This document shows, one piece after another, positions 1,355-63,220 of a stretch of DNA of 64,000 bases (its first letter is position 1; each line of letters opens with the position of its first letter). The translations under genes and the position numbers were made by a program. The notes beneath the pieces are model-generated. The model worked only from the letters and a program-made list of their open reading frames with translations, ran no database searches and had not been told where the DNA came from. This DNA comes from Octopus bimaculoides (lineage: Eukaryota). Where the stretch lies: positions 15,008,516 through 15,072,515 of the forward strand of contig NC_069002.1 of assembly GCF_001194135.2 (NCBI RefSeq). The letters are read 5' to 3'.

Positions 1355-1535
1355 CTTTACTACAATTTCCATTTTGATTACAATCATTGGGACACATAGA
1401 CTCAATAATATTTAGTGGTGGTCCTCTTGATCCATTCACTGTTATCCACAAGTCAACATTGTTTTCAATCGAAGTCAAACATTGTTCTTTTAAGTTCTCT
1501 AAAGCAGACGAAGCCCAAGACTTGTCATCGGTGAG
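1355..1535 (-). CDS. Exon C13: C8-like end + first half of EGF (gene continues below coordinate 1)
   Basis: gttgtag|[34 protein letters not shown]|GTGAGG; 181 nt, phase 0-1; no matching exon 14 found in 1..1354. Confidence 0.9.
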
Positions 1536-4500
1536 CTACAACAACAATAACAAAGATCACAATGAAATATCATGGAAACAGGGAAGAGAGTGATTTAGTA
1601 TATTGGTGTTTAATTAGATATACCAAGTCCTTAATTACAGTATTATGCATCAATGTGTAAAACTTGTTTCGTTTGAAATAATAAATTTTTGAAACACTTA
1701 GATAAAAGAAATAAATATTTAGGCACAGGAGTGGTTGTGTGGTAAGTAGCTTGCTTACCGACCACATGGTTCTGGGTTCAGTCCCACCATGTGGCACCTC
1801 AGGCAAGTGTTTTCTACTATAGCCTCAGGCCGACCAAAGCCTTGTGAGTGGATTTGGTTGACGGAAACTGAAAGAAGCCCATCATATATATNNNNNNNNN
1901 NNNNNNNNNNNNNNNNNNNNNNNNNNNNNNNNNNNNNNNNTATATATATATACATATGTGTGTTTGTGTGTCTGTTTGTACCCCCCACCATCGCTTGACA
2001 ACCGATGTCGGTGTGTTTATGTCCCCATAACATAGCGGTTCGGCAAAAGGAACCAATAGAATAAGTACTAGGCTTACAAAGAATAAGTCCTGGGATCGAT
2101 TTGTTCGACTAAAGGCGGTGCCCCAGCATGGCTACAGTCAACTGACTGAAACAAATGAAAGAATTTATATTGCAGTCTTCAACCATACTCTTTAAGGCCT
2201 GCATAATCTTGAGATCAAGATTTTATAGACATATCATTTCACCTTATGTTGTAACTGCTGTTCTTCCTCTCATATCATTTCGTAACTACTCCCCCTTCTA
2301 TGATTTCATTCTGCTTTCTCTCTCCCTCCAGCTCTTTATATTTGCTAGCAATACAAAACAACCTCCATTAGCCAAACTTCTCTTGAGAAGGGGAGCAGAA
2401 TTTTTTGCAATATCTTCCTGGTCATTGATTGCATACCCATGACTTTTTGCATATAATTCCTACAAGATATGATTATTACACAACTTTTGGCTTCCTGAAA
2501 CAGCTGTTAAGTTAAAAATTAATTAATCTCTTTATATATATTTTTTGGTTTGTATTCTGTATATCTTGTGTGCTCCATGTAAATATATAGTAATAATAAT
2601 GATTAATAATGAATGACAGTGATGAAAAATGAGAATGATACTGACAATATCAATTATAATGCTGTCATGATGATGATGATGATGATGACAATAATGATGA
2701 TAATAATGATGACAAAGATGATGGTAATGACAACAATCATAGCCACATCAGTTAAACTTACTTTGATATCTTCAACACATGAGGTTATTACATTTGAAAA
2801 GCTCACATCCTTAACTTTCTCACAATATTGGCCTGACTTGCTCTGCCGAATGAAGTCCATGCAATACTTGCGAGCATTTTCTTCTGTGATTCCACTTGGT
2901 GTTGGCCATGTACCCTCCTACAAAAGAAAGAAGTAAATAATAAAAATATTATTAAGAAACCAAAAGACATAATTCAAAACTCTGTGAAAAATAAAGCAGT
3001 GTGGTACTAGAGGTTAAGAGAGTGGGATTAACAGTGAGGGGATAAGAGAATGGGATTAACAGTGAGGGGCGAAGAGAATGGGATTAACAGTGAGAAGTTA
3101 AGAGAGTGGGATTAACAGTGAGGGGCTAAGAGAATGGGATTAACAGTGAGGGGCTAAGAGAGTGGGATTAACAGTGAGAGGATAAGAGAATGGGATTAAC
3201 AGTGAGGNNNNNNNNNNCAGTGAAAGATTAAGAGAGTGGGATTAATAGTGAGGGGATAAGAGAATGGGATTAACAGTGAGAGGTTAAGAGAGTGGGATTA
3301 ACAGTGAGAGGATAAGAGAATGGGATTAACAGTGAGGGGATAAGAGAATGGGATTAACAGTGAGAGGTTAAAAGAGTGAGATTAACAGTGAGGGGCTAGG
3401 AGAGTGGGATTAACAGTTAGAGGTTAAGAGAGTGGGAGTAATAGTGAGAGGCTAAGAGAATGGGATTAACAGTGANNNNNNNNNNGAGTGAGATTAACAG
3501 TGAGGGGCTAGGAGAGTGGGATTAACAGTTAGAGGTTAAGAGAGTGGGAGTAATAGTGAGAGGCTAAGAGAATGGGATTAACAGTGAAAGGTTAAGAGAG
3601 TGGGATTAACAGTGAGGGGATAAGAGAATGGGAATAACAATGAGAGGTTAAGACAGTGGGATTAACAGTGAGGGGATAAGAGAATGGGATAACAGTCAGA
3701 AGTTAAGAGTGGGATTAACAGCAAGAGGTTAAGAGAGTAACTACATTAGTTTTGCTGAAGTTTAAATAGTGGGCAAAAGCACATCATCATCCTCCTCATC
3801 ATCATCATAGTTGTTGTTTTTATGTTCACCTTTTCATGTTGGCATGGGTTAGAGGAGATGTGTTGAAGCAGTATTCTTGATGCCTTGCCTTCATGTTTTC
3901 AAGAAGGGTTCTTTGTTCCAAATGGGAATTTGTACATTGAACCACTGAGTGGGATGTTTAATTTTATGGAGGACACAAATGAATGTCACTGCACTGTTAA
4001 TGTGGACATAGAACAATTAATGTGGACATGCATGCTGACATGGAGAGAGACGGAGATGGTGAAATTGGTAACGGAGGAGAAAGAAACTCGAGAGGCTAGA
4101 GTAGAAGAAGGAGGAAGTTGCATGTTGGGAGTGGAAGGAGATAAAGTAGAAAGAGAAAGAAGTGATAGAGTAGAAAGAGAAAGAAGTGATAGAGTAGAAA
4201 GAGAAAGAAATGATAGAGTAGAAAGAGAGAGAGGTAAATAGGTAAGTAGATACATACCTACATACATACATACACAAATATATATACATATATGATTATA
4301 TGCAAACACATACACACATATAAACCATCATCCATCATCATCGTTTAACATCCACCTTCCATGCTGGTATAGACCCCAATCAGTCAGGAATGAGTATGGG
4401 GTTGCACCTAGAAAGTTCCATCTAAGGTACAAGTCCGATCAGGTTGTTTATGAAAGACCAGTAGTCGCCCATGCATACTGGTCTCCCCTCTCCATGCCAA

Positions 4501-7500
4501 CAGTGTTATCCAAGAGAAAAGTAAAGGTTGATATTGCTTGGCACCAGTGACATCATAACTCATTTCTACAGCTGGGTGAACTGGAGCAATGTGAAATAAA
4601 GTGTCTTGCTCAAGAAAACAACAATGAGCCCAGTCCAGGAATTGAACTCACTACCTCATGAATGTGAGCCTGATTCTCTATCAACTAAGCCATGCACAAC
4701 ACATAAGTACAGACATGCAAACATATATACGTACCTAAGAAAGAAACACAGAAAAAAGAGGGATATGATGTAGTGGTGGTGTATAAATAAGATATTATTT
4801 TACTTACAGGACTGGTATAATTATGGCTGACTTCAAATATTTCTCTTTGATCTGCTGAAACACATTTCCCAGTGACAGTAGCCTCTTCAAGTAGCATTTC
4901 AGTAATGTCTTTTACTGTAAAGAGAGATAATGGTGTAATTTAACTCAGAAAATATTGATACTGTACAAAACTCAGGCTTGTTCTACAATGGAGTCTTATT
5001 TCTATGTCTGGATCAATTCTACTGCTTACTGCTACAAACACAAACATTGTAGACTGCATTCAGAAAACAGTCGTCCAACAGATTGACAGAAAGTCACTCA
5101 CAGATAACTAGATTCTGGCCCACAGTTGCTCTGTGTCCTCTCTATGCTTTTTCTGCCCCTACTTTACTAGCATCTTCTCCTCACAGCTGTCCACACTTGT
5201 GACATCTACATCTGAGCATTCCTGATTCATTTGTTTCTGCTCTTCTCCTCTCCTCCCCTCATCATGTCTTTCCCACTGGTGTTGACTTACAATGCTTTGA
5301 GGTAAATATTAGCAGCATCAATCTCACTAATCTTCGAGAATCGGAAAAACCATGAGCACTCCCTCTTCCTCCAGAACCCCCTGCCCACCAGTGAAAAATC
5401 CAAAAAACAAAACAAGTTCATAAAAACATATTAAATAATATCAGTTTCTAACAAAGAGGTGGAGGCGCAATGGCCCAGTAGTTAGGGCAGCGGACTCACG
5501 GTCGAAGGATCGCTGTTTTGATTCCCAGACCGGGCATTGTGTGTGTTTATTGAGCGAAACACCTAAGCTCCACGAGGCTCCGGCAGGGGGTGGTGGCGAC
5601 CCCTGTTGTACTCTTTCGCCCCCAACTTTCTCTCACTCTTTCTTCCTGTTTCTTGAGTAACGTTGCGATGGACTGGCGTCCCGTCCAGCTGGGGTGGGGG
5701 GAATACATACGCCATAGGAACCGGGAAACCGGGCCCATTAGCCTGGTTAGGCTTTGAAAGGGCAACGTTTATCGTTTCTTTTTCTAACAAAGAAACAAAT
5801 TTGGTGGAAGGTGAAATACCAACATTATTTATTGTCTGTTTTCCATACTGAAATGGATTGGACAGTTTGACAGGAACTGGTAAGGCCAAGAATTGCATCA
5901 GGCTCCATTGTCTTCTTTGGCATGGTTTCTGTAGCTGCATGCATTCCCTAACACTAACCACTTTACAGAGTATGCTGGTTGCTTTTTATGTAGCACCAAC
6001 ACTGGTGCTTTTTACATGGCATTGACACCAGCACAGTTGCCAAGTAACCTGCAAGATGATTATCTCTCAGCTGGGGGAAGGAATGGAACCATGGAAGTGG
6101 TTGTGTGCCAGGTGAGAGGGATAGATATTGGCATCTTACTGGTTTTTAATGTATCACTAAGTTAACGGTGGTGGATGTCTGAAGATCAAAAGGTGCCATA
6201 TTTCCAGCTTGCCTTGTACAAACTTTCTCTCCATGTGTAGAAGTGATTTTAGTCATGCATTCTGCGAATGGTTGTAAGGAAGTTTATCAGAATCCATGTT
6301 GAAAGCTCGTCATGAAAAATGGTAGAACTGCAGTATTTTGATGCTCTACGGACTAATCTAGTTTCTACATGGTCACTCAATTTGCTAAACTAGCCAATGA
6401 GTAAATTTTAATGGGCCTGCTAGATATGCAAGAAATGGCAGCCAAATTTCCTTTAAATCATAGCTCATCATTTTTAAAAAAGGAAGGACAATGCAGTATG
6501 GGAAACTCTATAACTGTAAAATAAAGGCATGATAGTCATGGGTGGAATTATAGCTGCTGGCATGATGATGCACTATGTCAGGGTTTCAAATTATGATTAT
6601 TCTTTTGTTAGTATAGTATAAAAAACCAATTGGTACTTTGATGGTTGCAAGGAATAATTACATATCTTTAGCATTTTTTATTCAGTAACAGTGATAAGTA
6701 ATGATGAAGGATTAGTAGTGATAATACGAGCAGGAAAAAGATGAAATGTAAAATTAGAGACAAGTTTGATTTACCTTTTCCTCTACCATTTTTAATTTCA
6801 ACTTTTGAGCTATTCATCCTTTTGTTAATAGCATCACAGGACATCAGACCAAACCCACGGCCACACATTGCAGGCATCTTTTGACCACAAGTGCAATAGA
6901 TCTTTATGTCTGATTGTTTCTGACTTGTTTCTCCACAGAAACCATCATATAAAGAATTGTTCTCATAGACTCTGTTAAAAATGAAATATTTCTTATTTAG
7001 TGATCGTTAACAAAACAAGGATTTACAAATGGAAGAAATGAGCATAGATTTTTACGATTTTAGTTGATAGATTGGATGGAGCATAAATGAGTTGAAGGAG
7101 TTGCTGGGAACCAAATATAACAGGTAATGAATAAAAAAAGAACAATAATTCCATCAGTATGCGCCACAAATGGAAAACTTGTATTTGCTGACAGTGGAAG
7201 GTTGTATGAGTAAGGAGGAGATTAATAAAAGTGGCAAAGTAAAATGTCTGATTGTTTGGACTTCATGGACGAAATGAACAAGGATCAGCACAGGTGACAA
7301 TTATAAGAGTGAAGATCTTTCCAATCCAGTTCAACCTGAAGAAAACTGATGTTAAGGCAAGGATGGTAACTGAGCAGCTGAAGAGATGTTTGTAATAAAT
7401 ATATGTAATTTGTTTATTTTTTGTATAATATCAGGTCGCTCTTTAGCGCTACTGGTAACATGTAACCCAGTAGAACCTATCGCATGGTCGGGTCGTCAGT

Positions 7501-9099
7501 GACTAAACTGGAAACAGCATCAAGCTTGCTTGGTGAGGAGGGTGATTGTTGGGCACCCTGTGGGACAAAAATAAGACCCGTCAAAGGGTGGAAGAACTAA
7601 TGTGTAGTCAATGGCCAATTCAACAAGTACCTTGTTGTGGTGAAGTGCCATTGACCTAGAGTGCTATGCTGGAGGGAGAGAAATCTTCAGGCAGGTCTTA
7701 CCAGGCCGAAAAGTAGGAGACAGACAAAATCTTAATGACGATAAATCAAAGCGTTGGCAGCAGGGTGTGGATTTAGTTATCGGCAGGACCTAACAGATCA
7801 AGTTCCTGGCTTTGAACTAGCAGGATGTCATGCAGAGGATCTTAAATACAAGACAATGGATGGGACCCTAATATTCCTAGTTAGATGGAAACTGCGGGGC
7901 CACATGGAGCAGCACCCTAGGTCATCCCATAGGATGCCCCTCATAGGGGAAAAACTGAAACCTCTATGAGGGGGCATCCTATGCGGTGACCTAGATGAGA
8001 TGAAATACTTTTTGTTTATTATGAAGAAAACATCAAGGTTTATTTCATTGTTGTCATAAAAAAAAGAGTAAAGACCCTTTTTGGTCATGAATGACCATGG
8101 GATTGCACCTAGAAAGTTACCCTCCGAGGCACAAATCCAGGCAAGGTTGTTTATGAAAGACCAGCGGTCGCCCATGCATACCATTCTCCCCTCTCCACAC
8201 CACTGATGTTATCCAAGGGAAAGGCAAAGATCGATACAGCTTGGCACCACTGACATCATAACTCATTTCTACAGCTGAGTGAACTGGAGTAATGTAGAAT
8301 AAAGTGTGTTGCTCAAGAACGGAACACACAGCCTTATCCAAGAATTGAACTCACCACCTCATGATCGTGAGCCCAATGCTCTAACCACTGAGACATGTGC
8401 CTTCAGTGCCCTGGGATATCGCCATTAAATTACAAACATCTTCTCATAGCAGTACCTTAAAAATCAGCAATGAGTTGCAGACAAAGGAAGAAGCAGCTAC
8501 AAGATTTTCAGGAAGCAATAAGCAATAATAGGGGTTACGATTGACTATAGATCTGTTCGATGTTGGCTGACCTGGGTTTAAACACACAATATTAAAAATA
8601 TTTCTCTTACCTCCAGCTTAGCGAGAACTTATTTGGTTGAGATTTACTGGATGTTAATGTCTGTCCATCAGACATTAACAGATCATTCTTTGTGTTATGA
8701 TCAAAGGTTCCACACAAACCTATTAATATAAGAAAATTGATATAATTAAGACAACGAAAATGAAAGTAGCAATCAATATACACTGTGTGTGTGTGTGTGT
8801 GTGTGTGTGTCCAGTTTATTTGGTTCCAACTTCTTCATAAACAGTACAAACGTATTCCACATAATAATCATGAAGCCTCTTTGAGAAAGTTCTCTGTTAC
8901 ATTATTTTTGTATCCAATGGCATAGGAGTGGCTGTGTGGTAAGTAGCTTGCTTACCAACCACATGGTTCCGGATTCAGTCCCACTGCGTGGCATCTTGGG
9001 CAAGTGTCTTCTACTATAGCCTCATGCCGACCAAAGCCTTGTGAGTGGATTTGGTAGACGGAAACTGAAAGAAGCCCGTCGTATATATGTATATGTGTA

Positions 9100-9166
<67 letters not shown>

Positions 9167-9880
9167 TTGTGTGTGTTTGTCCTCCCAACATCGCTTGACA
9201 ACCGATGCTGGTGTGTTTGCATTCCAGTAACTTAGACGTTCGGCAAAAGAGACCGATAGAATAAGTACTAGGCTTCCAAAGAATAAGTCCTGGGGTCGAT
9301 TTGCTCGACTAAAGGTAGTGCTCCAGCATGGACACAGCCAAAAGACTGAAGCAAGTAAAAGAGTAAAAGAGTAATGTAAAACAATAAACATTTTGTTCCA
9401 AAATAACATCAGAATGTGATGTGTTTTATAAAGGGTTCTTGAAGAAATATATAAAATGTAAATCTGAAAAAAGAATGGACAGTATATAAAATAGGGGGAA
9501 AAAAGTAAGAAAATATTCAGCTATGTCAATGACTGGCCTTTGTTTTTAAGGGTCACAAAATAGTTTAACTTTCTCAAAGATTAATCTTTAGCTACCAATA
9601 AATTCTAACCATCCATATATACGTAAATATATTTTTTGGAATGGTGGTACTTGATACAGATAAAGCTATAAGTAACAGCATGTAAATATTGGGTGAAAAA
9701 AACTTTTGGGATATAAACAGTCAAAGTCTGGTCATGGGACTTGAACCCACATTTTTTGTTAACATGACAAATGTTTTACCATTGGACCAAAGCAATCTTT
9801 TAAATTTCTCAGTTCATTTTAGAAACTTTATTGTTATCAGTGAGAAATTTTATGTTGCTGATGTGTGTGTGTGTGTGAGA

Positions 9881-9933
<53 letters not shown>

Positions 9934-12693: not shown

Positions 12694-12948
12694 NNNNNNN
12701 NNNNNNNNNNNNNNNNNNNNNNNNNNNNNNNNNNNNNNNNNNNNNNNNNNNNNNNNNNNNNNNNNNNNNNNNNNNNNNNNNNNNNNNNNNNNNNNNNNNN
12801 NNNNNNNNNNNNNNNNNNNNNNNNNNNNNNNNNNNNNNNNNNNNNNNNNNNNNNNNNNNNNNNNNNNNNNNNNNNNNNNNNNNNNNNNNNNNNNNNNNNN
12901 NNNNNNNNNNNNNNNNNNGCACTAAGATGGTAATAGACAGAAATTGCC

Positions 12949-23922: not shown

Positions 23923-23955
<33 letters not shown>

Positions 23956-24168
23956 ATAATAACAACAATCCTTTCTACTATAGGCACAAGGCCTGGAATT
24001 TTGGGGAGGGGGTAAATCAATTACACTGATCCCAGTATTTAACTGGTACTTAATTTGTTGACCCCAGAAGGATGAAAGAATGTAAACAAAACAACAGCAT
24101 TTGTCAAGTGGTGAAACACACAAACACAAATTTATAATTACATCAATGTGTGTGTGCATATGTATACA

Positions 24169-24235
<67 letters not shown>

Positions 24236-24482
24236 GTATATTCTTTTATTCTTTTACCTGTTTCAGTAATTTGACTTCGGCCATGCTTGAGCACTCCCTT
24301 TAAGGGTTTTTTTAGTTGAAGAAACCTTATTCTTTGTAAGCCTAGTACTTGTTCTATCAATCGTTTTTGCCAAATCGCTAAGTTACAGGGCATAAACACA
24401 CCAACATTGGTTGTCAAGTGATGGTGGTGGTGGTGGAAAACACAGACACAAAGACCCACATAAGTATACACACACACACACG

Positions 24483-24533
<51 letters not shown>

Positions 24534-49041: not shown

Positions 49042-49072
<31 letters not shown>

Positions 49073-55000: not shown

Positions 55001-56998
55001 TAAACCACATCATACCATCTTAAAATAAGATGATACCAAAATCTGCATTAGATTGCTCTATTGCCTGGCCATGATCTTATGAACCAGCCCAGGATTTCTG
55101 AGACTGATAGAAAGGAAAGGAAGTTAACCTTACACTAGATACATGGCTCAAATGCCACAAAATGAGCTCCACTGAAGACCATCCAAGGATAAAGTGGTGT
55201 TAAAAGAATTAAGGCAGTGTTGGATACAAGATATCTGAAACACTTTTGAACATGGATCAACTCAGTGGTGAATTTAGTGGACTAAGGCTTTTCTACTGGT
55301 ATGACTGCTTGTAAAAGACCTGTGACAATGACAGAAACATTATCTCCTTGGCTGACAGCCCCTTAGAGTTTGAGACTTTAGGCTTCAATTTGCCAAACCT
55401 ATAGGTAATTCAGGCACTGAATTTAATCACTGAGGGTTAACTGATCAGGAGATAGATCACTGAACCAAATAATAGCTACTAAGGGTTTAACTTATTCAAC
55501 TGAATAAGAAAAAAAAATTGACTGAATGCATCATATCATGTAATTTTAAGTTGTTCTCTCAGAGATGATTAGCCTCAAGAAAATTTTTTTGTCAGAAATG
55601 GATATAAATAGTTGTATAAAGCCTTAATACATTATTGAGATAAGCTCAATATGCTTGCAACAGATCTCTAGAAACTGCACTCAATTCTCAGATCGTAGAC
55701 TGTTTCTTGGAAAACAAAAGTACTTTGAATACTGTAGTCTGAGGTATTCAATGCCTACATTTTAAGATATGATGATTATGGCTGGAATGCCTTTGACCAT
55801 GGGTTTGACCATGGGTTTGATCATGGGTTTGAACTAGGCTTAAACAACAGACAGACGAATAGACATATAGACAGACAGATAGAGGTAGGTGTAGTGCTAT
55901 AAACAAAGTTATTCTTTAACTTACACGAGGAGTGCACTTATCATTGTTACAATCTTCACACAGTGGGTTGTAATGTTTAACTGTGATGCTAACACTCCAG
56001 ATACCATTACTATTGCTGATGGAAACATTCTGAGTTCCTTTCTGGGGTACTGGACACATGATCTGTTCAGAACTGATATAACTAGCTTTCAGGTAAAAGA
56101 TTTGGGAATTTTCTTTCTGAAAACAGAGAGAGAAAAAAACAAAAAAAAAAAACAAATTAATATAAATAAAATTTAAGCAGAAGGAAATATATTTGAGATG
56201 ACACCATCAAATCCTAACAAAAACTGGACAAATTCTGTTGAGTCAACTGCCATCCAACAGATGGGAATGAAAGATCCTTAGTCTTTGTTCAGACATTTGT
56301 CAAAGAGAAGGTAATCTCTGATGTTACACCTGCAATTTCGTTTGCATCAAATGATGTAGACTAAGTTCTTCACTTTTAACAAATGCATATTTTATATAGA
56401 GTGTAGGAATGACCCTGTATAAGACTTTTTCTCCCTTTAAAAAACTTTCAGGCTGAGTTCTCACTTGATTTTTAACATCTATATTAAGTATGAGTTACTA
56501 TGGCTGACCAGAGTTGAAAAAAAGTAAAACACTCTATGAAAAACCTCATGATGGAAAGAAGGCATGTGTTCGTGAGAACGGTAGCTCTGTGAACGTCTGT
56601 TGCAAGAGATGCCCATTAGTGTCACATCTGTGCAAAAGAGTGTTGGCCCCCACCAACAGGACTGAAAAAGTCACACTCATATGGCTTTATGAGAACAATC
56701 AAACAATTGCTTGAAATCAAGTTGCAGCCCTCGTGAATATATACATGTGTGTGTGTGTGTGTATACACACACACACACATATATATATATATATTTTTTT
56801 TTTCTAGAAAACTATGTAATCGTTACCATTATAGCAAGAGATTTCACCACAAAAGGTCTAAATTAGACTCCTTAAGGATTGTTCTCCTTGGTTATATATC
56901 CAAAGTTTTAAATTTAAAAGAGAGTTTTGATGCTGATATCCATTATTATTATTTCAATAATAATGGATATTAGCGTCAAAACTCTCTTTTAAATTTAA

Positions 56999-57034
<36 letters not shown>

Positions 57035-57157
57035 GAACAGGTGTATTAGACTCAGGAAGAATGGAAAAGTCTTTAGTATTTTGAGCCTACGCTCTTCGAT
57101 GGAAAGGGATGAGAAAAAAAAATTGTGAGAGAAAGAAAAAAAAAAAAACGGAGAAAT

Positions 57158-57198
<41 letters not shown>

Positions 57199-60100
57199 AC
57201 CTTGGTAGTCAAAGCTGGAAATTTTCTTAATAGGTCTGCTTCCATCAAGTCAGGCCTGGGACTAAACAACTCATGATGAAGATGATGATGATAAGAATTT
57301 TTAGTTTTGTTTTTGCATAAAAGATTAAAAAAAAGAATAACTCAAAACATGCTGCTTACATTTTCTCTGATTGAGCAAGTAAGATTGGGACCTTCAATAA
57401 AACCACTTCCAGTTACTACCAGGTCCCTTATTTTGTTCAAAACTTGGATCTTTCTGATGAAGTATGTTGTCTCAATAGTTGGTGGTTTGACAATACTGAT
57501 GGAACAGTCAACACCATCAAATAGTTGGTTACACAGGCAAACACCTGAAATAAACAGAAACATAAGATTTAAAGAATGACTGACTAATTCATTTTAAGTA
57601 CCACTGTTTCTGATAAGAAGTAGGCTTCTATTTTTTAAGGACTCAGAAACTGAGAGAAGTGGGGATGTTAACCTTAAACTAAGAGTAGTCTGGTCTAAAT
57701 GTCTGCAACAGAATGAACTTTACTAACGGCATCCAAGGACTGTTTGGTGTGGGGTGAAATTGGGCAACAGATTAATCCAGACACCTAGCAACTCAGAATT
57801 GAAAGAGACAGAACAAGTACTTAAGGAATCTCATCTGAAGTTCAAACAATTCTGTCTATCCACTGTCAAAAAAAAAAACAAAAAAAAAAACAATATATGA
57901 ACAAAAAACATAGAAGCTATACCTGGACCCTCAGCATGATTTTGGAGAATGTCAGCTTTGCTTATTGTCATTATTATTATTATCAAACATATAAAGGTGC
58001 ATAATCTAGTGGTTAGAGTGTTGTAGTCATGATTGCAAGGTTGTGGTTTCTATTCTCAGACTGGCACTGCCGTATGTTCTTGAACAAAATATTTCATTTG
58101 CTGTTGCTCTGGTCCACTGAACTGTAAATTGCTAATTCTGCAATGTACTGGTATTCTATTCCCCCAAAAATGTTGGTCTGCTTGCTTAATTAGCAATGTG
58201 GAATGATTAAAAAACTACAACAATGTGAGGAAGAACATTATAGGTAGTTACATTCTTGAGTCAAACCAACTCATAAGGGCTGGTTTCCCAGTTTCTATGG
58301 CATATAGATTCCCCACATGGATGGGACACCAGTCCATTACAGGATTACTCATTTTTGCCAGCTGAGTGGACTGGAGCAATGTGAAATGAAGTGTTTTACT
58401 CAAGAACACAATGCATCGCCAGGTCCAGGAATTGAAACCACAGTCATGAGGCCAACACCCTAACCACTAAGCCACACACCTCCACTTAGAAGAACACTAT
58501 GACTAGAGGTGTATAACATCGTCTAATAGTCTGACTGTTACAGTAAAACAGTGATTATCAAATATGGTGATCAGCCAAAAGCAGTAGAGCAGCAGGCTAA
58601 ATGATTTATAATCTTTAGTTTCAGCTCTCTGTCAGTTGTCATTTTACTGGGTCCACTTAGCCTTTAATCCTTTGTGTAGTCAATAAAAGGAGACAGTAAG
58701 GTTAAAGAGTCTCCAATGGAATGATAGAATAGAAACTAGTGGTGGCCTGTGTCAATAAATATTGAGTGTACAGAGAGGAATTAGTTAGTTTGCTGTGAGA
58801 AAAGAAGAGAGATCTTGTGTTTTGGACAAGGCTCTTCATTAGAAAACAATAAAATATATTTACTGCAGATGTCATCATAGACTTTGATCCACTTCTGACC
58901 CTCATAATTACACAAGAAATATTTTTAACCTTTCAGTCGTGGTTAGATTCATTTATAAACAGTATCTAAACTATTGAACTATTGCTTACCTTTCTCACAG
59001 GTACCCTGGTTACTACAGTCATTCAAACAAAGTGCATCAGTTATATTTGAAGGAAACTCAGGTAGTTCACCAGCTTCAGGAACTATCCACTCAGTAATGT
59101 TGGTCTTTATTTGAGTGAGACAAGTTTCTTCAAGGTTGCTTAGTGCTGCTAATGTCCACATCACATTTCCAGTTAACTGTTAAAGTAAAAGAATAAAAAA
59201 ATAAGATAAAAGTGATACGTTTATGTATTCAGCTATTAATTGGCTCACTATGGTATTCCTTAACCCATTCATAGCCATATTTCTGTTGAATTACAATGTC
59301 TATGTTCAAGTAATTTTGTAAATAATGAAGAATTTTGTAAGAAAACTTTGTCATCATTCCACTGGTGTTTGGAACATAAATATATTTTGATGGAAGGTTT
59401 AATCACTTTGAAACAGGAAATCTATATAATAGAACCAGAGGCAGTTTCAGGTAAGTTAATATCAAAAGGGTTAAACTCTTGTCCCAAACACAGAAGCTAT
59501 TGTTCTTGACAGCAATTATTTACTATTTTAATTTTATATCAGGTAAACAATAACATGTTGGTTTCAGATACCTGAAGGGTTAATCACTAGTACACTGCAT
59601 TAGTAAGAACAAACACTTCACAAGGTTTTTTTATATGAAAGAACTGATGTATTAGTTTTCTTGCCAATATTTATATCTTTTATAGATATACCTCAGGTGA
59701 AGATAAACACAGTCAGTCAGTCTGTCTGTGTGTCCATTACATCCCCTCACACCATTTAGTTTGTTTCTGTTTACTTGCTGTTGTTGTTGTTGTTTGGTCC
59801 TCATGTCATCATCCTTGACTAAGCAGGCATTCTAGCCTGGCCCCTCGATCCTTCTCTTGGATATTTTGTATCAAAGACCACATTAGCCACTCTTTCCTCC
59901 CTGTCTACTTCCTTTCAATACTCTAAGATAAAATTTAAGGAAGATTTAGCAGCTATTTCTAACAGGTCAAGCAACCATGTAGAGGCACACTCATTATCTG
60001 TTGTTGTTGTTGAATTTCTGGTCAACTGTGTTCAAATAGACCCATTATCAAAGGTATTCCAACTGTGGCCATCTGTTATTTTATAGGGGTTTGTAAGACT

Positions 60101-63100
60101 AGATCTAATGAGTCCTCCTTTTATTTAAGATAGCAGTATGGTTAGAGGGCGATTTGGTTGCTCTTTTTTGCAGATTGAACAACTATGTAGAGGCTCCTTC
60201 ATTTTCTACAGAGTCCTGGTGGTGGTAGTCATAGCCAAGTAAGGTGAAGGCAATTGAGTTATAATATGAAAGTTGATAAATGCCTGACAATAAAATAACT
60301 TTTCAATTTATGTAACATCCTTCATTCTATACTTACAATAAATGCTAATCAATTAACAATAATTAAAATGATTGTGGATTGGTGGAATGAAAGAATAATA
60401 TGTTATTTGACTGATTGAAACATTTAAGTCTTTAGTCAACACAGACATATCTTGAAGATTATGATTTACCATTAGATCTTGACTGCAGAAGTAAATAATC
60501 TCAGTGTAGTTTATATTTGCAACGGATTTGCACTGTTTTCCTATTTTAGAATTTTTAATATGTTCAGAACATTTCTTCATACTCTCTGCTTCAGTAAGAT
60601 TTGACTGGAATTCCTGAGGGAGAAATTAAAATAGGAGTTTAATTAATATTTGTACAATAGAGTAAAAATTATCAAATGAATATTACTATTGACACCAATC
60701 ATTCTGCAAGTTTACATGAATTAAATTTATCTTTCAAGATTTTTAAAGCAAATTAATTTCATTCACTTAAAAAAAAAAAAAACAAGCTTATAGTATACAG
60801 TGCTCAAGTTTTCTACAACTCATCTGGTAAAAGGGAAAAGAAGGGAGAGAAAGCAGCAATAAGTGAAGTAAATAAAAACAGCAATGATAACTAAAAGTAA
60901 AAGTACAACAAACAGAATAAAAGATAGAAAAAGGTAACATAACAAGAAAACAGGATTTCCAAAATAGGAGGCAGGACAACTATATAGGGAAATTTAGGGC
61001 AACTAGGATACGACTCAATAGACAAAAGTCTTCTCCCAGTTATTGTTGCAGCCACGTTTCGTTGTATAAAACTGAGAGAAACCCCTAACAGAGAAACAAA
61101 AAAAAAACATCAAAAACTCAAAAGAAAATAACAAAATATGATTTACCTCTGCTACATAGGTGCTGTTGTATTCAAATATTATCTGTGGTTTATTAGTTAA
61201 ACATTTCTGTGGTGTCTCTGCAATCTTCAGTAAGGTTTCAGTGATGTCCAATCCTAATAAAAGGTTAGATGTTAAATATTTCAGCTGTCAAATATTTTAT
61301 GCGTGTGTGCAAATATATATATATATATAACAAAAAATATTTCAAGGATGAAGATTTTATATTTTCATTAATGCATTGCTACATATGTTTCGCCATGACA
61401 TGTATTTTTATGGGATCACCTCACTACATCGATAGGATATCAATAAATATTACTTATAATATCCATGTACTCGATGGGAAACCATTAATTTGACTGGAAA
61501 TGATTCATGGTGGCCAGCAACAAGCAACATAGGGACTTTTATGAGCGCACTGCTAGGTATCTGCCATTTACAAAATACAAAGATATATATATCAGAAGTA
61601 AAATGGATTAATAAATTCAGGCAGCTATCAAAAAAGCACTCAGTATTAAGCGAACTTGATTAACTATGTCAAATAATCAGATACCATTAAATTCAAATAG
61701 AATTAACATCCATTAACTAAGATATCTCTTAGAAGAATTTCAAGAAATCTATAGTATATGATAACATGAACAATATTGGAAAATAATCACATCTTTAATC
61801 GAGGTAACTTTTGTCTATATCTAAATATGCTGGCCCAATAGGAATAGTCATCAGTAATATAAGGTGTAACCATCAACTAAAGATGTGGTTTACTCCATTC
61901 TTGTTTATGCACACATACACACAAGCATACATACACACACACACATGCACGCATGCACACACGCACCCAACAACAACCTCTTGTTCTGGCAGATGCATTT
62001 ATTCAAACTCACAAATACCAGGTTTCCTTGGATACTAAATTTTATTTTTTTGTTTATTTATCGGTAGAAAGGTAAAATTTTATATAAATTTGAAAAAAAA
62101 AGTGTGAGCATATAAGATGAGGTTTATAGATTTAGAAACTCGACTATAGCGAGAGACTTAAAGTAGAGGACATGGAGGAAAAGGGAATAACTGTAAGGAG
62201 AGTGAGAACGGGGGAGAGGGAGAAAGGAGGAGAGAGAGAATGGGGGAGGAGAGAGAAACAGAGTGGTAAACAATAAGAGGTGAAGGCGCAATGGCCCAGT
62301 GGTTAGGGCAGCAGACTCGCGGTCAGAGGATCGTGGTTTAGATTCCCAGACTGGGTGTTGTGAGTGTTTATTGAGCGAAAACACCTAAAGCTCCATGAGG
62401 CTCTGGCAGGGGGTGGTGGCGACCCCTGTTGTACTCTTATGCCCCAACTTTCTCTCAGTCTTTCTTCCTGTTTCTTGAGTAACGCTGCGATGGACTGGCA
62501 TCCCGTCCAGCTGGGGGGGGGGGAGGAACACATACACCATAGAAACTGGGAAACAGGGCCCATGAGCCTGGCTAGACTTTAGAAGGGTGCATATATAGAA
62601 AATAAAAACAAAGAGAGAGAGGATAGAGAAAGGGAGGGGTGAGAGGGAGAGATAGATAAAGAGAGAGAGAGAGGGAGAGAGAGAGAAAGCCTGGCAAAAG
62701 TCGACCTATTTCATTGTGGGTGTAGATAATGAAGATAATGAAAATTAATGGACCATTTTGTGTTGTGTAGAAAGTCCTCCATTTAACAAAATGCTTCGTT
62801 CGGAAATAAAAGCTTGGTAATTGGATTGGCACGTGGCCTCAGAACTTTGGCTCAATACATCTCATCCAACTCATACCAGCAAGGAAAAGGTAAACATAAA
62901 AATAATAATGACAACGATGATTGCAGTAGTGGTGATGGTGATGGTGATGATAATGACAATAGTAATGATGATGGTGGTGGTGGTGGTAATGATGATGGTG
63001 ATGAAGAGGACAATGATAACAATAATTGTGGTACCAACCCAAGAATTTCTTCTGTTTCTTTCCTTTCTGAACTGCTACTGGTGCATTACAGTTTATGACA

Positions 63101-63220
63101 TCAAAGTTGGGACCACACACTTCTGGTTTGTTTTGTACACACTGGCAGTACCGTTGACCATATTCTTTAGAATTTGCAGTTGGACAATATCCATTGTAAA
63201 GAGAATCTTTCTGTTCAACT
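1355..63220 (-). CDS. VWDE: Giant VWDE-like secreted/extracellular protein, partial (37 exons, ~2250 aa in window; tandem LamG-Ig-VWD-C8-like-EGF-IPT super-repeats; open at both ends)
   Basis: 37 exons, each with AG acceptor and GT donor, join in matching phase with no stop (6749 nt = 1+2249x3+1). VWD motifs CxSINDPHxTTFD, GEFVxYRHKxLPY, FYRSCxGRASCNC and GLCGxFD..ND..F..SWR occur twice, plus EGF C-x3-C-x5-C-x4-C-x-C-x8-C. The symbol means family resemblance (VWDE-like); orthology is untested. Confidence 0.88.
1721..2160 (+). mobile_element. tRNA-derived SINE family B (internal TA/CA microsatellite)
   Basis: Head GGCACAGGAGTGGTTGTGTGGTAAG..GGTTCAGTCCC, GGCAAGTG motif, internal (TA)n, tail CCCCAGCATGG..GACTGAAACAA. 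Confidence 0.8.
2762..2917 (-). CDS. Exon C12: C8-like Cys-rich region
   Basis: tttgtag|[52 protein letters not shown]|GTAAGT; 156 nt, phase 0-0. Confidence 0.9.
3007..3740 (+). repeat. 28-bp minisatellite (ACAGTGAGRGGHTAAGAGARTGGGATTA)n, ~26 copies, with two N gaps
   Basis: Direct tandem repetition visible. Confidence 0.95.
4143..4232 (+). repeat. 24-bp purine-rich tandem repeat (AAAGTGATAGAGTAGAAAGAG-like), ~3.5 copies
   Basis: Direct repetition visible. Confidence 0.8.
4808..4914 (-). CDS. Exon C11
   Basis: tttacag|(V)[35 protein letters not shown]|GTAAGT; 107 nt, phase 1-0. Confidence 0.88.
5460..5772 (+). mobile_element. SINE family A' (family-A head, different tail)
   Basis: First ~180 nt as family A, then TTCTTGAGTAACGTTGCGATGGACTGGCGTCCCGTCCAGCTGGGG..GGGCCCATTAGCCTGG. 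Confidence 0.8.
6775..6971 (-). CDS. Exon C10: Cys-rich linker
   Basis: ttaacag|(R)[52 protein letters not shown]|GTAAAT; 197 nt, phase 2-1. Confidence 0.88.
7432..8000 (+). mobile_element. Probable retroelement 5' region with a candidate HDV-like fold
   Basis: GC-richer non-coding island with sharp AT-rich flanks; pairing CCAGT/ACTGG and ACC/GGT in HDV order (see finding). Confidence 0.35.
8080..8405 (-). mobile_element. tRNA-derived SINE family D
   Basis: Minus-strand head TGAAGGCACATGTCTCAGTGGTTAGAGC; body CACCTAGAAAGTTACCCTCCGAGGCAC. Other copies ~4385-4700, ~28515-29200 (split), ~43765-43860. Confidence 0.75.
8611..8719 (-). CDS. Exon C9: VWD end
   Basis: ttaatag|(G)[37 protein letters not shown]|GTAAGA; 109 nt, phase 1-2. 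Confidence 0.92.
8919..9372 (+). mobile_element. SINE family B
   Basis: Same head, internal (TA)n and tail as the 1721 copy. Confidence 0.85.
10672..10786 (-). CDS. Exon C8: VWD
   Basis: cctacag|[39 protein letters not shown]|GTAAAG; 115 nt, phase 0-1. Confidence 0.9.
11730..11942 (-). CDS. Exon C7: VWD
   Basis: ttttcag|[55 protein letters not shown]|GTACGG; 213 nt, phase 0-0. Confidence 0.92.
13017..13056 (-). ncRNA. Hammerhead ribozyme motif with decayed stem II
   Basis: Minus strand: GCUGU CUGAUGA UCAGUUAAUU GAAAC UCUGA GUA^ACAGU. Stem I 5 bp (1 wobble), stem III ACUC-U-GAGU, stem II barely pairs. Confidence 0.55.
13467..13602 (+). mobile_element. Short Penelope-like terminal-repeat relic with variant hammerhead-like motif (copy 1 of 3)
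   Basis: CUUU CUAUUGAA GAGC-AUAG-GCUC GAAAC AUA AAAG, then body ..TAATACACCTGCTTGTTGTTC..TGTAAATTTCAACTATATA shared with the 27.7 kb and 57.0 kb copies. Confidence 0.5.
13975..14617. other. Assembly gap (643 N); smaller gaps at 706-715, 1892-1940, 3208-3217, 3476-3485, 12694-12918
   Basis: N runs, mostly next to microsatellites. No exon is needed in this gap, since C6-C7 join in frame like B6-B7. Confidence 0.99.
14812..14873 (-). ncRNA. Type I minimal hammerhead ribozyme motif
   Basis: Minus strand: AUUUAG CUGAAGA U CAG..(23 nt)..CUG U GAAAC GAUC GUA^CUAAAU. Perfect 6-bp stem I, palindrome ACGAUCGU, stem II imperfect. Confidence 0.72.
15087..15150 (-). CDS. Exon C6: VWD
   Basis: ttatcag|(R)[21 protein letters not shown]|GTAATT; 64 nt, phase 2-0. 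Confidence 0.92.
15469..15545 (-). CDS. Exon C5: VWD start (NDPH)
   Basis: ttttcag|[27 protein letters not shown]|GTAAGA; 77 nt, phase 0-2. Confidence 0.92.
15711..15998 (+). repeat. ~290-bp (GAA/GAG)n polypurine tract
   Basis: Almost pure purine; begins ~10 nt into the intron after exon C4. Confidence 0.95.
16008..16412 (-). CDS. Exon C4: beta-sandwich domain before VWD
   Basis: gttacag|[41 protein letters not shown]|GTAAGT; 405 nt, phase 0-0. Confidence 0.9.
16702..17084 (+). mobile_element. tRNA-derived SINE family A, full length
   Basis: Head GGAGGCGCAATGGCCCAGTGGTTAGGGC..GTTTCGATTCCC, tail GGAGTGCCAAC(AAC)n; TSD CCCCTGATYGA. Confidence 0.85.
17972..18064 (-). CDS. Exon C3: Ig-like domain end
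   Basis: tttacag|[31 protein letters not shown]|GTAAGT; 93 nt, phase 0-0. Confidence 0.85.
18384..18716. mobile_element. hAT/Charlie-like MITE relic
   Basis: CAGAGGTTCTCAA ... TTGAGAACCACTG (12/13 TIR), internal GGACCCC subterminal motifs; no TSD recognisable. Confidence 0.55.
20227..20459 (-). CDS. Exon C2: Ig-like domain
   Basis: tttttag|(A)[31 protein letters not shown]|GTAAGG; 233 nt, phase 1-0. Confidence 0.88.
21583..21904 (-). CDS. Exon C1b: LamG-like domain, second half
   Basis: tttacag|[37 protein letters not shown]|GTAAGA; 322 nt, phase 0-1. Confidence 0.88.
22148..22206 (-). ncRNA. Type I minimal hammerhead ribozyme motif (Penelope-like-element type)
   Basis: Minus strand: GCGAU-UGUC-GUACG CUGAGGA C GGGU-AAAU-ACCC A GAAAC UCGA GUC^CGUAC-AU-AUCGC. 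Intact core, bipartite stem I, palindromic stem III ACUCGAGU. Confidence 0.8.
22985..23292 (-). CDS. Exon C1a: LamG-like domain, first half
   Basis: ttttcag|(V)[39 protein letters not shown]|GTAAAT; 308 nt, phase 1-0. Confidence 0.88.
25729..25843 (-). CDS. Exon B16: Cys-rich end of unit B
   Basis: tttgcag|[39 protein letters not shown]|GTTAGA; 115 nt, phase 0-1. Confidence 0.86.
26134..26524 (+). mobile_element. SINE family A, full length
   Basis: Perfect 13-bp TSD ATTCCTGTTATTC. Confidence 0.9.
26908..27090 (-). CDS. Exon B15: IPT-like domain end
   Basis: tttgtag|[49 protein letters not shown]|GTAAAT; 183 nt, phase 0-0. Confidence 0.88.
27680..27800 (-). mobile_element. Same short element family (copy 2 of 3)
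   Basis: Minus strand: CUGUCGAA GAGC AGAG ACUU GAAAC, body ..ACACACCTGCTTGTTGTTCCTACACCTG..TGTAAATTTGAACTATATA. Confidence 0.5.
28042..28229 (-). CDS. Exon B14: second half of EGF + IPT-like start
   Basis: tcttcag|(G)[52 protein letters not shown]|GTAAGT; 188 nt, phase 1-0. Confidence 0.9.
28815..29118 (+). mobile_element. Family C copy nested inside a family D SINE
   Basis: Family D sequence stops at ..GTCTTACTCAAGAGAAAGA and resumes after the (GAT)n tail with AAGAAAAACAC..GAACTCACTACCTCATG. Confidence 0.7.
29352..29541 (-). CDS. Exon B13: C8-like end + first half of EGF
   Basis: attccag|[34 protein letters not shown]|GTAATT; 190 nt, phase 0-1. Confidence 0.9.
29723..30094 (-). mobile_element. 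SINE family A, full length
   Basis: 15-bp TSD TGTTAGTATACATGT. Confidence 0.9.
30566..30740. mobile_element. Tc1/mariner-like MITE relic
   Basis: TA|CAGTCATGGCCAAAAGTTTGGAAC ... GTTCCAAACTTTTGACC (16/17 inverted). Confidence 0.55.
30901..31059 (-). CDS. Exon B12: C8-like Cys-rich region
   Basis: gccatag|[53 protein letters not shown]|GTGAGG; 159 nt, phase 0-0. Confidence 0.9.
31330..31850 (+). mobile_element. Degenerate R4/Dong-like non-LTR retrotransposon 3' end (CCHC knuckle + RLE)
   Basis: [34 protein letters not shown], then [24 protein letters not shown], then [26 protein letters not shown], broken by frameshifts. Confidence 0.75.
32310..32422 (-). CDS. Exon B11
   Basis: tctgtag|(V)[37 protein letters not shown]|GTAAGT; 113 nt, phase 1-0. 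Confidence 0.88.
33129..33513 (-). mobile_element. SINE family A, full length
   Basis: 11-bp TSD CCTAAAGGTAG. Confidence 0.9.
34885..35151. mobile_element. Candidate solo LTR
   Basis: GC-richer island starting TGTAGT and ending ATTACA; no TSD found. Confidence 0.3.
35560..35729 (-). CDS. Exon B10: Cys-rich linker
   Basis: tcttcag|(R)[57 protein letters not shown]|GTAAAA; 170 nt, phase 2-1. Confidence 0.88.
35945..36725 (+). mobile_element. SINE family B split by a hammerhead-bearing insertion (~36085-36440)
   Basis: 5' half ends ~36080 and the 3' half resumes after (TA)n at ~36490; the hammerhead relic at 36331-36379 lies between them. Confidence 0.65.
36331..36379 (+). ncRNA. Hammerhead ribozyme relic (two core substitutions)
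   Basis: GUCU CCGAUGA AGGGA-(12 nt)-UCCCU GAAGC AGCU GUA AGAC. All three stems recognisable; U4>C and A15.1>G relative to the canonical core. Confidence 0.6.
37152..37561 (-). mobile_element. SINE family B
   Basis: Reverse-complement full copy. Further approximate copies: 10160-10465(-), 12228-12612(-), 24250-24680(-), 31860-32200(-), 63798-63970(+). Confidence 0.85.
37689..37797 (-). CDS. Exon B9: VWD end
   Basis: ttggcag|(G)[37 protein letters not shown]|GTAATT; 109 nt, phase 1-2; same length as C9. Confidence 0.92.
39836..39947 (-). CDS. Exon B8: VWD
   Basis: cgaccag|[38 protein letters not shown]|GTAAGT; 112 nt, phase 0-1. Confidence 0.9.
40232..40627 (+). mobile_element. SINE family A, full length
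   Basis: 10-bp TSD ATGGAAAAAG. Confidence 0.88.
41155..41450. repeat. Compound (TA)n/(CA)n microsatellite with an internal ~100-bp duplication
   Basis: CGAATATATGAATATATA..CATATATACACATAC occurs at 41231 and 41331. Confidence 0.9.
41503..41709 (-). CDS. Exon B7: VWD
   Basis: cttatag|[55 protein letters not shown]|GTATGG; 207 nt, phase 0-0. Confidence 0.92.
42445..42508 (-). CDS. Exon B6: VWD
   Basis: tttccag|(K)[21 protein letters not shown]|GTAAGT; 64 nt, phase 2-0; same length as C6. Confidence 0.9.
43105..43150 (+). ncRNA. Minimal hammerhead ribozyme motif (stem III probably CpG-decayed)
   Basis: AACAC CUGAUGA A GGCUG-(10 nt)-CAGCC GAAAC AUU GUGUU. Stems I and II are perfect 5 bp; ACAU stands where the ACGU palindrome is expected. 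Confidence 0.68.
43508..43584 (-). CDS. Exon B5: VWD start (NDPH)
   Basis: tttctag|[27 protein letters not shown]|GTAAAA; 77 nt, phase 0-2; same length as C5. Confidence 0.9.
44745..45480 (+). mobile_element. 5'-truncated HERO-like (R2 group) non-LTR retrotransposon: restriction-like endonuclease + 3' UTR; limits approximate
   Basis: ORF 44731-45282: [70 protein letters not shown], the PD-(D/E)xK-type C-terminus typical of HERO-clade elements. Confidence 0.8.
45935..46325 (-). mobile_element. SINE family A, full length
   Basis: 11-bp TSD TCTTTGAAACT. Confidence 0.9.
46436..46849 (-). CDS. Exon B4: beta-sandwich domain before VWD
   Basis: gttacag|[54 protein letters not shown]|GTAAGT; 414 nt, phase 0-0. 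Confidence 0.9.
47006..47287. mobile_element. MITE with ~85-bp TIRs and 8-bp TSD (Merlin- or hAT-like)
   Basis: GGCGATCTTTCGGTACTAGTCCGCCATAACTTCCGGTCGTTG.. mirrored by ..CAACGACCGGAAGTTATGGCGGACTAGTATCGAAAGGTCGCC; flanks GGTTTCTC / AGTTTCTC (7/8). Confidence 0.8.
48530..48622 (-). CDS. Exon B3: Ig-like domain end
   Basis: tttctag|[31 protein letters not shown]|GTAAGT; 93 nt, phase 0-0; same length as C3. Confidence 0.85.
48877..49300 (+). mobile_element. SINE family B
   Basis: Full, well-preserved copy. Confidence 0.85.
49497..49884 (-). mobile_element. SINE family A, full length
   Basis: 12-bp TSD CAATAGTAGTAT. Confidence 0.9.
50094..50320 (-). CDS. Exon B2: Ig-like domain
   Basis: tttttag|(D)[31 protein letters not shown]|GTGAGA; 227 nt, phase 1-0. 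Confidence 0.88.
51074..51280 (-). mobile_element. tRNA-derived SINE family F, young copy
   Basis: Head GGCGGCGAGCTGGCAGAAACGTTAGC..GTTCAAATTCCGCCG; TSD TTTTGTTTTCT. Decayed copies ~25425-25625, ~25885-26095, ~23960-24090. Confidence 0.8.
51610..51744 (+). mobile_element. Chimeric SINE: family B head fused to family A tail
   Basis: GGCGCAGGAGTGGCTGTGTGGTAAG (B head) runs directly into TGTCTGTGGAGTGCTCAGCC..GGAGTGCCAACAACAAC (A tail). Confidence 0.7.
52372..53007 (-). CDS. Exon B1: LamG/concanavalin-A-like domain (single exon)
   Basis: ctttcag|(Y)[53 protein letters not shown]|GTAAAT; 636 nt, phase 1-1. Confidence 0.9.
53196..53583 (+). mobile_element. SINE family A, full length
   Basis: 12-bp TSD CAGTAACTTATT. 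Confidence 0.9.
54800..54914 (-). CDS. Exon A16: Cys-rich end of unit A
   Basis: ctttcag|[39 protein letters not shown]|GTAAGT; 115 nt, phase 0-1; same length as B16. Confidence 0.88.
55925..56116 (-). CDS. Exon A15: IPT-like domain end
   Basis: ttttcag|[50 protein letters not shown]|GTAAGT; 192 nt, phase 0-0. Confidence 0.9.
56901..57004. repeat. ~100-bp foldback (45-bp arms, 5-nt loop), probable TA-targeting MITE
   Basis: 56906-56950 is the reverse complement of 56956-57000 at 43/45 positions; flanked by TA runs. Confidence 0.85.
57030..57112 (-). mobile_element. Same short element family (copy 3 of 3, decayed)
   Basis: Minus strand: CUUU CCAUCGAA GAGC-GUAG-GCUC AAAAUAC UAAAG..TAATACACCTG. 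Confidence 0.45.
57360..57544 (-). CDS. Exon A14: second half of EGF + IPT-like start
   Basis: atttcag|(G)[43 protein letters not shown]|GTAAGC; 185 nt, phase 1-0. Confidence 0.9.
58990..59176 (-). CDS. Exon A13: C8-like end + first half of EGF
   Basis: ttaacag|[34 protein letters not shown]|GTAAGC; 187 nt, phase 0-1. Confidence 0.9.
59264..59470. mobile_element. piggyBac-like MITE relic
   Basis: TTAA|CCC ... GGG|TTAA ends; a related partial copy lies at ~54235-54345. Confidence 0.45.
60470..60613 (-). CDS. Exon A12: C8-like Cys-rich region
   Basis: ccctcag|[48 protein letters not shown]|GTAAAT; 144 nt, phase 0-0. Confidence 0.88.
61147..61253 (-). CDS. Exon A11
   Basis: ttattag|..(G)[35 protein letters not shown]|GTAAAT; 107 nt, phase 1-0; same length as C11. 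Confidence 0.88.
62281..62590 (+). mobile_element. SINE family A'
   Basis: Same head and tail as the 5460 copy; a tail-only fragment lies on the minus strand at ~42292-42360. Confidence 0.8.
62905..63025. repeat. (GAT/GGT/AAT)n trinucleotide low-complexity tract; similar tracts at ~2590-2745, 20925-20985, 25215-25310
   Basis: Visible trinucleotide runs. Confidence 0.85.
63039..63220 (-). CDS. Exon A10: post-VWD Cys-rich linker
   Basis: ttcctccag|A GTT..; [60 protein letters not shown]; donor G|GTTGGT; 182 nt, phase 2-1; homologous to B10/C10. Confidence 0.85.

Follow-up and report, generated by a model that had tools for sequence, protein, structure and literature searches.

In vertebrates, giant proteins with many VWD domains form mucus, clots, inner-ear membranes and Reissner's fibre. 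The repeat of FCGBP, VWF, the gel-forming mucins, zonadhesin, otogelin and SCO-spondin is VWD-C8-TIL(-E). FCGBP has 13 VWD modules, most of them with a GDPH autocleavage motif. VWDE, the other described system to be considered here, combines one VWD with a long array of EGF repeats at its C-terminus (PMC9117669).

The locus compared here with these systems was analysed in a window of 64,000 nt, the whole stretch of DNA under study, from Octopus bimaculoides (GCF_001194135.2, NC_069002.1, positions 15,008,516-15,072,515, forward strand). The window is AT-rich (37% GC) and has six assembly gaps, five of which lie within the gene region. The gene model was rebuilt independently from the paralogy between units, AG/GT splice-site scans and phase continuity. 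Six-frame self-BLAST of ORF pieces was at first drowned by interspersed repeats and became informative after pieces matching on both strands or with many partners had been dropped. With the repeat-derived pieces excluded, the stop-free pieces of the minus strand exhibited clear paralogy among three regions. The resulting model runs on the minus strand from 63220 to 1355 and comprises 37 exons, each with an AG acceptor and a GT donor, divided among a partial unit A (7 exons), a complete unit B (16) and a partial unit C (14). The features are as follows.

54800-63220, minus strand: unit A, C-terminal 370 aa, with Cys/helical linker, EGF, TIG-like domain and Cys tail; the unit starts beyond the high end of the window.
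63220-63039, 61253-61147, 60613-60470, 59176-58990, 57544-57360, 56116-55925 and 54914-54800, minus strand: the seven exons of unit A, placed by AG/GT sites and phases.
53008-54799, minus strand: intron A/B, phase 1, GT..AG, 1,792 nt; contains a SINE-like repeat; RNA joint.
25729-53007, minus strand: unit B, complete, 16 exons, 3,057 nt, 1,019 aa; the model sum equals the RNA contig.
52372-53007, minus strand: exon B1, 636 nt, LamG-like domain, assigned via homologues.
50094-50320, minus strand: exon B2, 227 nt, first part of an Ig-like domain; weak Ig_VWDE match (E=0.005, 17.2 bits).
48530-48622, minus strand: exon B3, 93 nt, completes the Ig-like domain; the unit C paralogue is 18064-17972.
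46436-46849, minus strand: exon B4, 414 nt, beta-sandwich, no family match.
43508-43584, minus strand: exon B5, 77 nt, start of VWD, with an invariant NDPH motif.
42445-42508, minus strand: exon B6, 64 nt, VWD.
41503-41709, minus strand: exon B7, 207 nt, VWD.
39836-39947, minus strand: exon B8, 112 nt, VWD.
37689-37797, minus strand: exon B9, 109 nt, end of VWD, GLCGNFDG motif; the PDB profile matches to VWF and FCGBP fall here.
35560-35729, minus strand: exon B10, 170 nt, start of the linker, Cys-rich; no C8/TIL match.
32310-32422, minus strand: exon B11, 113 nt, linker.
30901-31059, minus strand: exon B12, 159 nt, linker.
29352-29541, minus strand: exon B13, 190 nt, linker plus the first EGF half.
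28042-28229, minus strand: exon B14, 188 nt, second half of the EGF and start of the TIG-like domain (TIG weak, E=0.018).
26908-27090, minus strand: exon B15, 183 nt, TIG-like; RNA joint 25843/26908 in four runs.
25729-25843, minus strand: exon B16, 115 nt, Cys tail; closes unit B, in phase 1; contig piece in four runs.
23293-25728, minus strand: intron B/C, phase 1, 2,436 nt, microsatellite-rich.
1355-23292, minus strand: unit C, N-terminal 860 aa, continuing past the low end of the window; Pfam VWD, E=1.5e-13.
23292-22985, 21904-21583, 20459-20227, 18064-17972, 16412-16008, 15545-15469 and 15150-15087, minus strand: exons 1-7 of the 14 of unit C, the first two being a split LamG.
11942-11730, 10786-10672, 8719-8611, 6971-6775, 4914-4808, 2917-2762 and 1535-1355, minus strand: exons 8-14 of the 14 of unit C.

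When joined, the exons give 6,749 nt (2,249 aa). The coding frame contains 0 stops, and the two remaining frames contain 248 and 130. A stop-free run of 2,249 codons at 37% GC cannot have arisen by chance. In the window portion of the gene this 6.75 kb of exonic sequence is scattered across 62 kb. The proposal of the sequence-only reading that 37 exons join in one frame was thereby reproduced independently, as were the 16 exons and 3,057 nt that it had given for unit B, the latter both by the model sum and by the RNA contig ruler described below.

Intron phases are identical between the homologous exons of units A, B and C. Equal lengths are seen in the pairs 93/93, 77/77, 64/64 and 109/109 (B and C), 115/115 (A and B) and 107/107 (A and C), so that all the pairs listed earlier were recovered. 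The 93/93 pair was not found by cross-unit similarity and was recovered through phase and splice score; among open AG..GT exons of 93 nt, exon B3 is the only one that scores well in the required phase, and it is needed for the RNA length of 3,057 nt. Protein identity between units is 31-34% (E=1e-159 for B and C), and the repeat is therefore real and old, in agreement with the age first assigned to the duplication. Both unit borders in the window have phase-1 introns, so a unit is phase-symmetric, with phase 1 at both ends. In the window model, the unit borders lack a stop, a terminal exon and any ATG with signal peptide. What lies in the window is, with high confidence, part of the interior of one minus-strand protein-coding gene of very large size; it is a real gene and not a set of tandem paralogues.

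The LamG-like domain is encoded by one 636-nt exon in unit B (53007-52372), and in unit C a phase-0 intron (22985-21904) divides it into 308 + 322 nt, so that an intron was gained or lost after duplication of the units. Past the donor of exon A9 the frame stays open (62842-63038) as a His/Tyr-rich simple repeat. RNA depth is zero at 63007-63034, beyond this donor, and the stretch is therefore intronic and not coding.

The order of domains in a unit is LamG-like, Ig-like (weakly VWDE-type), a second beta-sandwich, VWD, a Cys-containing linker of ~200 aa, an EGF of teneurin/tenascin type, a TIG-like domain and a short Cys tail. VWD (PF00094, cut-off 22.9 bits) was matched in all five aligned units, with 47.6 bits (E=2.9e-12, residues 469-629) in unit B and 51.8 bits in unit C. 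The frame in the window holds these two, and the part of unit A present begins after its VWD. EGF_2 (PF07974) scored 24.3 bits at residues 845-871 of unit B, against a cut-off of 22.1, and EGF_Tenascin scored 60.1 bits in the orthologue from Argonauta. Each unit has a VWD and one teneurin/tenascin-type EGF, both over the Pfam cut-offs. The TIG (PF01833) scores per unit were 20.5, 20.0, 18.1 and 15.5 bits, all under the cut-off of 20.9. The Ig_VWDE (PF25776) score was 17.2 bits for unit B and rose to 22.4 bits for the Argonauta orthologue of that unit; both are under the cut-off of 28.1, and the other two of the four units tested gave no match. In PDB sequence and profile searches the only matches were to VWD (VWF, FCGBP) and EGF (reelin, teneurin).

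The assignment of exon B1 was made through homologues. It gave no direct Pfam match to Laminin_G_1/2/3, even at E<=10. An exhaustive HMMER (phmmer) search with exon B1 returned 244 relatives. It aligned with residues 53-199 of Haliotis P0005 (E=1.6e-31), overlapping a Laminin_G_3 at 92-223 in that protein, and with Owenia P0011 (E=1.1e-27), a protein in which Pfam finds ten Laminin G domains. It also matched a region of a Sinanodonta protein called Laminin_G_3 by Pfam. These homologies support a LamG-like domain in exon B1. A single-sequence AF2 model of the exon was all-beta with pLDDT 38, too poor for a fold test. The AF2 model of exon B4, built on the B4/C5 alignment, was also all-beta (pLDDT 59), and Foldseek returned only generic Ig-like or pilin matches (TM <= 0.42); the predicted fold of B4 is taken as all-beta and no further.

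C8 (PF08742) and TIL (PF01826) were detected neither in whole units (E<=0.01-0.1), nor in the piece after VWD (E<=10), nor in the homologues. The cassette had been labelled LamG-Ig-VWD-C8-EGF-IPT. In that label VWD and EGF stand over Pfam cut-offs and LamG stands via homologues, the Ig_VWDE and TIG matches are sub-threshold, and C8 finds no support.

At the start of the VWD, N473-D474-P475-H476 is invariant in 5/5 aligned units. This position is one which we take to be that of the autocatalytic G-D/P-H cleavage motif in MUC2, FCGBP and RGM. Unit B carries 42 Cys residues together with 16 N-x-S/T sites. Like FCGBP, VWF, the gel-forming mucins, zonadhesin, otogelin and SCO-spondin, which are giant, secreted and rich in VWD, the product carries many VWD, and the unit profile matches the VWD of FCGBP and VWF in PDB. 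Unlike these VWD-C8-TIL proteins, the octopus repeat is LamG-Ig-beta-VWD-linker-EGF-TIG, with NDPH and with no detectable C8/TIL. As judged from its domains, the product belongs with the giant secreted proteins of many VWD domains, as a variant whose repeat unit differs, secretion being predicted from the domain types. With C8/TIL absent and NDPH in place of GDPH, polymerisation chemistry of the VWF or mucin kind may not apply.

The comparison with VWDE was made by its published description and its Pfam profile. VWDE, described as VWD plus EGF repeats (PMC9117669), likewise has VWD followed by teneurin-like EGF, the order found in each octopus unit, and the units show a weak likeness to its Ig domain PF25776 just upstream of VWD (17.2 and 22.4 bits). 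A place for the units with VWDE is nevertheless unlikely. The Ig_VWDE matches lie under the 28.1-bit cut-off and occur in 2/4 units tested; there is a single EGF per unit and no C-terminal EGF array; and the VWD are many rather than one. VWDE has no super-repeat, and the LamG cap and TIG-like domain are outside its published domain description (PMC9117669). The protein had first been called VWDE-like: this holds as a resemblance, in the VWD with teneurin-like EGF and the weak Ig_VWDE match, and is a lead towards a possible membership.

Support for splicing came from contigs assembled from short reads of public runs of the same organism, placed on clean short stretches of the window. At the A/B border the joint 53007/54800, which skips 1792 nt (CT..AC on the plus strand, that is GT..AG on the gene strand), is present in X13, X25, X27 and X30, and matching loose ends were seen in three more runs, X14, X17 and X29. 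At the B/C border, X27 has a loose end before 25729, AAATGATAACAATTAGTTGCATTTGATTGA, whose 30 nt are identical to window 23263-23292. RNA support at the unit junctions was thus found in 7 of the 8 runs examined. Loose ends also confirmed the pairing of 54914 with 55925 (to 55954), of 27090 with 28042 (to 28071) and of 1535 with 2762 (to 2791). In raw reads of X42, exon coverage is confined to pairs with the first mate on the plus strand, which is the pattern that a stranded library should give for RNA from the minus strand. The inter-unit intron has no RNA depth except at repeats, and among the contigs examined none ends at a unit border. Spliced RNA crosses both borders in frame. Both junctions for which RNA reads had been called for, 54800/53007 and 25729/23292, are therefore present as joints or loose ends, and the earlier preference for one polypeptide over tandem paralogues is upheld.

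The X13 contig, of 39,860 nt, spans units A, B and C at uniform depth and served as a ruler for the model. Window 25729 corresponds to contig position 11847 and 53007 to 14903, which gives 3,057 nt for unit B. The position of 1535 (9447) equals the prediction for the 14-exon unit C exactly, and that of 63039 (15834) equals the prediction for unit A exactly; 54914 (15018) fits the model sum too. The five gaps in the gene region, at 1892-1940, 3208-3217, 3476-3485, 12694-12918 and 13975-14617, are all intronic. As the contig coordinates agree with the model to the base, no exon is hidden in the five gaps and none is missing or misplaced. The intron with the gap 1892-1940 was confirmed directly, the loose end at 1535 being identical to window 2762-2791.

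Contig depth was 80-300 in several runs and about 2-3 in others, and this contrast indicates strong, tissue-dependent expression. X13, X14, X25 and X29 are runs of high depth, X42 and X33 of low depth. Two minor observations were made on the contigs. A 172-nt X27 contig of low depth (2.5) covers window 1147-1318, just 3' of exon 1535-1355; it lies within the presumed next intron and is probably pre-mRNA. At position 52781, in exon B1, the X25 and X27 contigs have A where the window has G, a C>T change when read along the gene, in the third position of a codon. This variant is a polymorphism, and its direction is unlike that of A-to-I editing.

A SINE-like interspersed repeat occurs in many introns in both orientations (53185-53612, 26100-26520, 25500-25560, 62127-62578, 16678-16928, 5444-5768 and others). 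Its word depth in RNA contigs is 1e4 to 4e5, against ~100-300 for the gene exons, and it matched no Rfam family or tRNA. A second interspersed repeat family (716-880, 1716-1891, 8885-9310, 48800-49310 and 63757-63998), often beside (TA)n or (CA)n microsatellites, has an RNA contig depth of ~1e5. Rfam and tRNA scans of the whole window gave no matches, nor did Pfam on six large non-gene ORFs of the window.

The contigs that carry these exons are 39,860, 40,880 and 41,006 nt long, and a spliced mRNA of at least 41 kb is shown by them. A very large protein of >2250 aa had been suggested; with a transcript of at least 41,006 nt, that size was understated. In four runs from three studies the distance between exon A15 and the contig's 5' end is 24,836-24,842 nt, and this constancy argues for a genuine common 5' end. 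The mRNA before unit B measures ~24,951 nt (8 x 3,057 + 495). A further ~16,055 nt (5 x 3,057 + 770) extend from where unit B starts as far as the longest 3' end, so that ~13 kb lies downstream of the unit. Window 63181-63204, 24 nt of exon A9, recurs in the long contig at a distance of 6,054 nt towards the 5' end; the copy is exact in X13 and has 2 mismatches in X25. This spacing, about two unit lengths, points to a homologous unit two places upstream. At the low end, the loose end before 1354 reads 'KCFCDKNFI' in translation and belongs to the next EGF exon, which lies outside the window. The 24-nt recurrence and this exon both fit an array that extends in both directions. From the lengths we infer a whole mRNA of ~13 units and ~13,000 aa, and the full gene would be expected to extend over some 0.35-0.4 Mb; 6.7 kb of the ~41 kb were read, and the rest, including the continuous ORF, the signal peptide and the C-terminus beyond the window, is projected from lengths.

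A giant mRNA could still give much smaller functional products, either by skipping of whole units or by cutting of a polyprotein into unit-sized pieces. The phase 1-1 symmetry at both borders would make unit skipping frame-neutral, NDPH is conserved at the position of a known autocleavage motif, and the linker has a basic stretch. No contig, however, has a unit-skipping joint, although contigs lose rare isoforms, and there is no conserved furin-type RxxR at the unit borders. Where GDPH cleavage is known, moreover, the fragments remain disulfide-linked. We consider small products improbable. That each unit is a gene of its own, of ~1,020 aa, in a tandem array of paralogues, with the long transcripts being read-through or assembly chimeras, is barely credible and already largely refuted: arrays of diverged paralogues are common and the depth of short-read contigs is flat by construction, but the phase-1 joints 54800/53007 and 25729/23292 are exact in up to 7 independent runs, the unit borders have no ATG with signal peptide, stop or terminal exon, the inter-unit intron has zero RNA depth save at repeats, contigs never end at a unit border, the Argonauta models likewise cross unit borders, and an amino acid identity of 31-34% is too low for repeat-driven misassembly.

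The closest relatives in the databases are two overlapping 'hypothetical proteins' of Argonauta hians, GAB1607640.1 (3,038 aa) and GAB1607641.1 (3,759 aa). These have the same super-repeat, collinear with units A, B and C in order, with four VWD and tenascin/teneurin EGFs by Pfam. Aligned over 1,018 aa, unit B shares 51% identity with residues 1457-2464 of Argonauta P0001, against ~31% for the other units, and all 42 of its Cys are kept in the orthologous unit. The VWD is the best-conserved part, with 51% identity between paralogues and 63% between orthologues. Argonauta represents a different octopod lineage. From the unit-for-unit orthology it follows that the amplification predates the split of the lineages, and the orthology together with the conservation implies purifying selection on each unit since the split. 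The Argonauta models begin and end mid-unit and are truncated, unnamed and undescribed. The longer one (of the P0001, P0151 pair) begins with a Met inside the linker region. They are fragments of a far larger gene, and re-annotation is probably needed.

Outside cephalopods, the Ig-to-tail cassette (query residues 215-1016, ~800 aa) was found with E values of 1e-92 to 1e-118. A single copy, with 28-31% identity, is present in each of four proteins: Lingula anatina 'mucin-17' (XP_013398006.1), Haliotis rubra (XP_046563492.1), Sinanodonta (KAL3863376.1) and Ylistrum (XP_060084593.1). In these lophotrochozoan proteins of about 2,000-2,800 aa the cassette is preceded by LamG domains homologous to exon B1, several in a row and often with discoidin (F5/8 type C). 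They differ from the octopus protein in having no tandem repetition of the whole module, and all are uncharacterised. The gastropod Bulinus truncatus has an uncharacterised protein of 3,858 aa (KAH9523928.1) with at least 4 (4-5) tandem cassettes and 4 Pfam VWD, in which the LamG cap is missing from most units; the cassette amplification there is probably independent. A word-indexed protein search with exon B1, unit B and the 5-unit alignment returned no relatives, which reads as a limit of the index and not as absence. A literature search for a described cephalopod protein of this kind found no paper. The suspicion that the architecture was undescribed or split in annotations is thus borne out, as the only close relatives are the truncated Argonauta hians models.

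A sequence of events can be proposed from these comparisons. The array would have arisen by tandem amplification of a 'LamG + VWD cassette' module that is single in other lophotrochozoans, and this amplification would have preceded the split between the Octopus-type and Argonauta lineages. The analogy with VWF, gel-forming mucins, FCGBP, otogelin and SCO-spondin makes a secreted extracellular scaffold, N-glycosylated and rich in disulfide bonds, the most likely product. Its VWD assemblies could form polymers or fibres, and its many LamG and Ig surfaces could bind ligands or carbohydrates. Each unit may undergo self-cleavage at NDPH, with the pieces held by disulfides. On the same analogies, a role as adhesive scaffold or extracellular polymer appears the most likely; the matrix, mucus or adhesive function suggested at first is likewise an inference. 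In its fullest form the proposal is of one ORF with ~13 LamG-Ig-VWD-EGF-TIG units, ~13,000 aa or ~1.5 MDa, which would be among the largest extracellular proteins and the founder of an undescribed octopod class of giant VWD polymers, derived by amplification of the single lophotrochozoan cassette, with units that may cleave themselves at NDPH as FCGBP does at GDPH. For this combined proposal we hold the prospects to be evenly balanced.

The locus is a case of annotation failure, in which the close models are truncated 'hypothetical proteins' and the relatives are missed by a word-indexed search; a gene well expressed by its RNA contigs is effectively invisible in the databases. The unit-for-unit orthology with Argonauta provides a dated example of an ancient tandem amplification of a module, followed by conservation of the identity of each unit. 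With units that are phase 1 at both ends, the locus lends itself naturally to the study of alternative splicing at the level of whole units. A cephalopod protein of a size comparable to or larger than the giant multi-VWD proteins, built of a multi-domain unit of ~1,020 aa instead of VWD-C8-TIL, would represent an independent route to a huge extracellular polymer.
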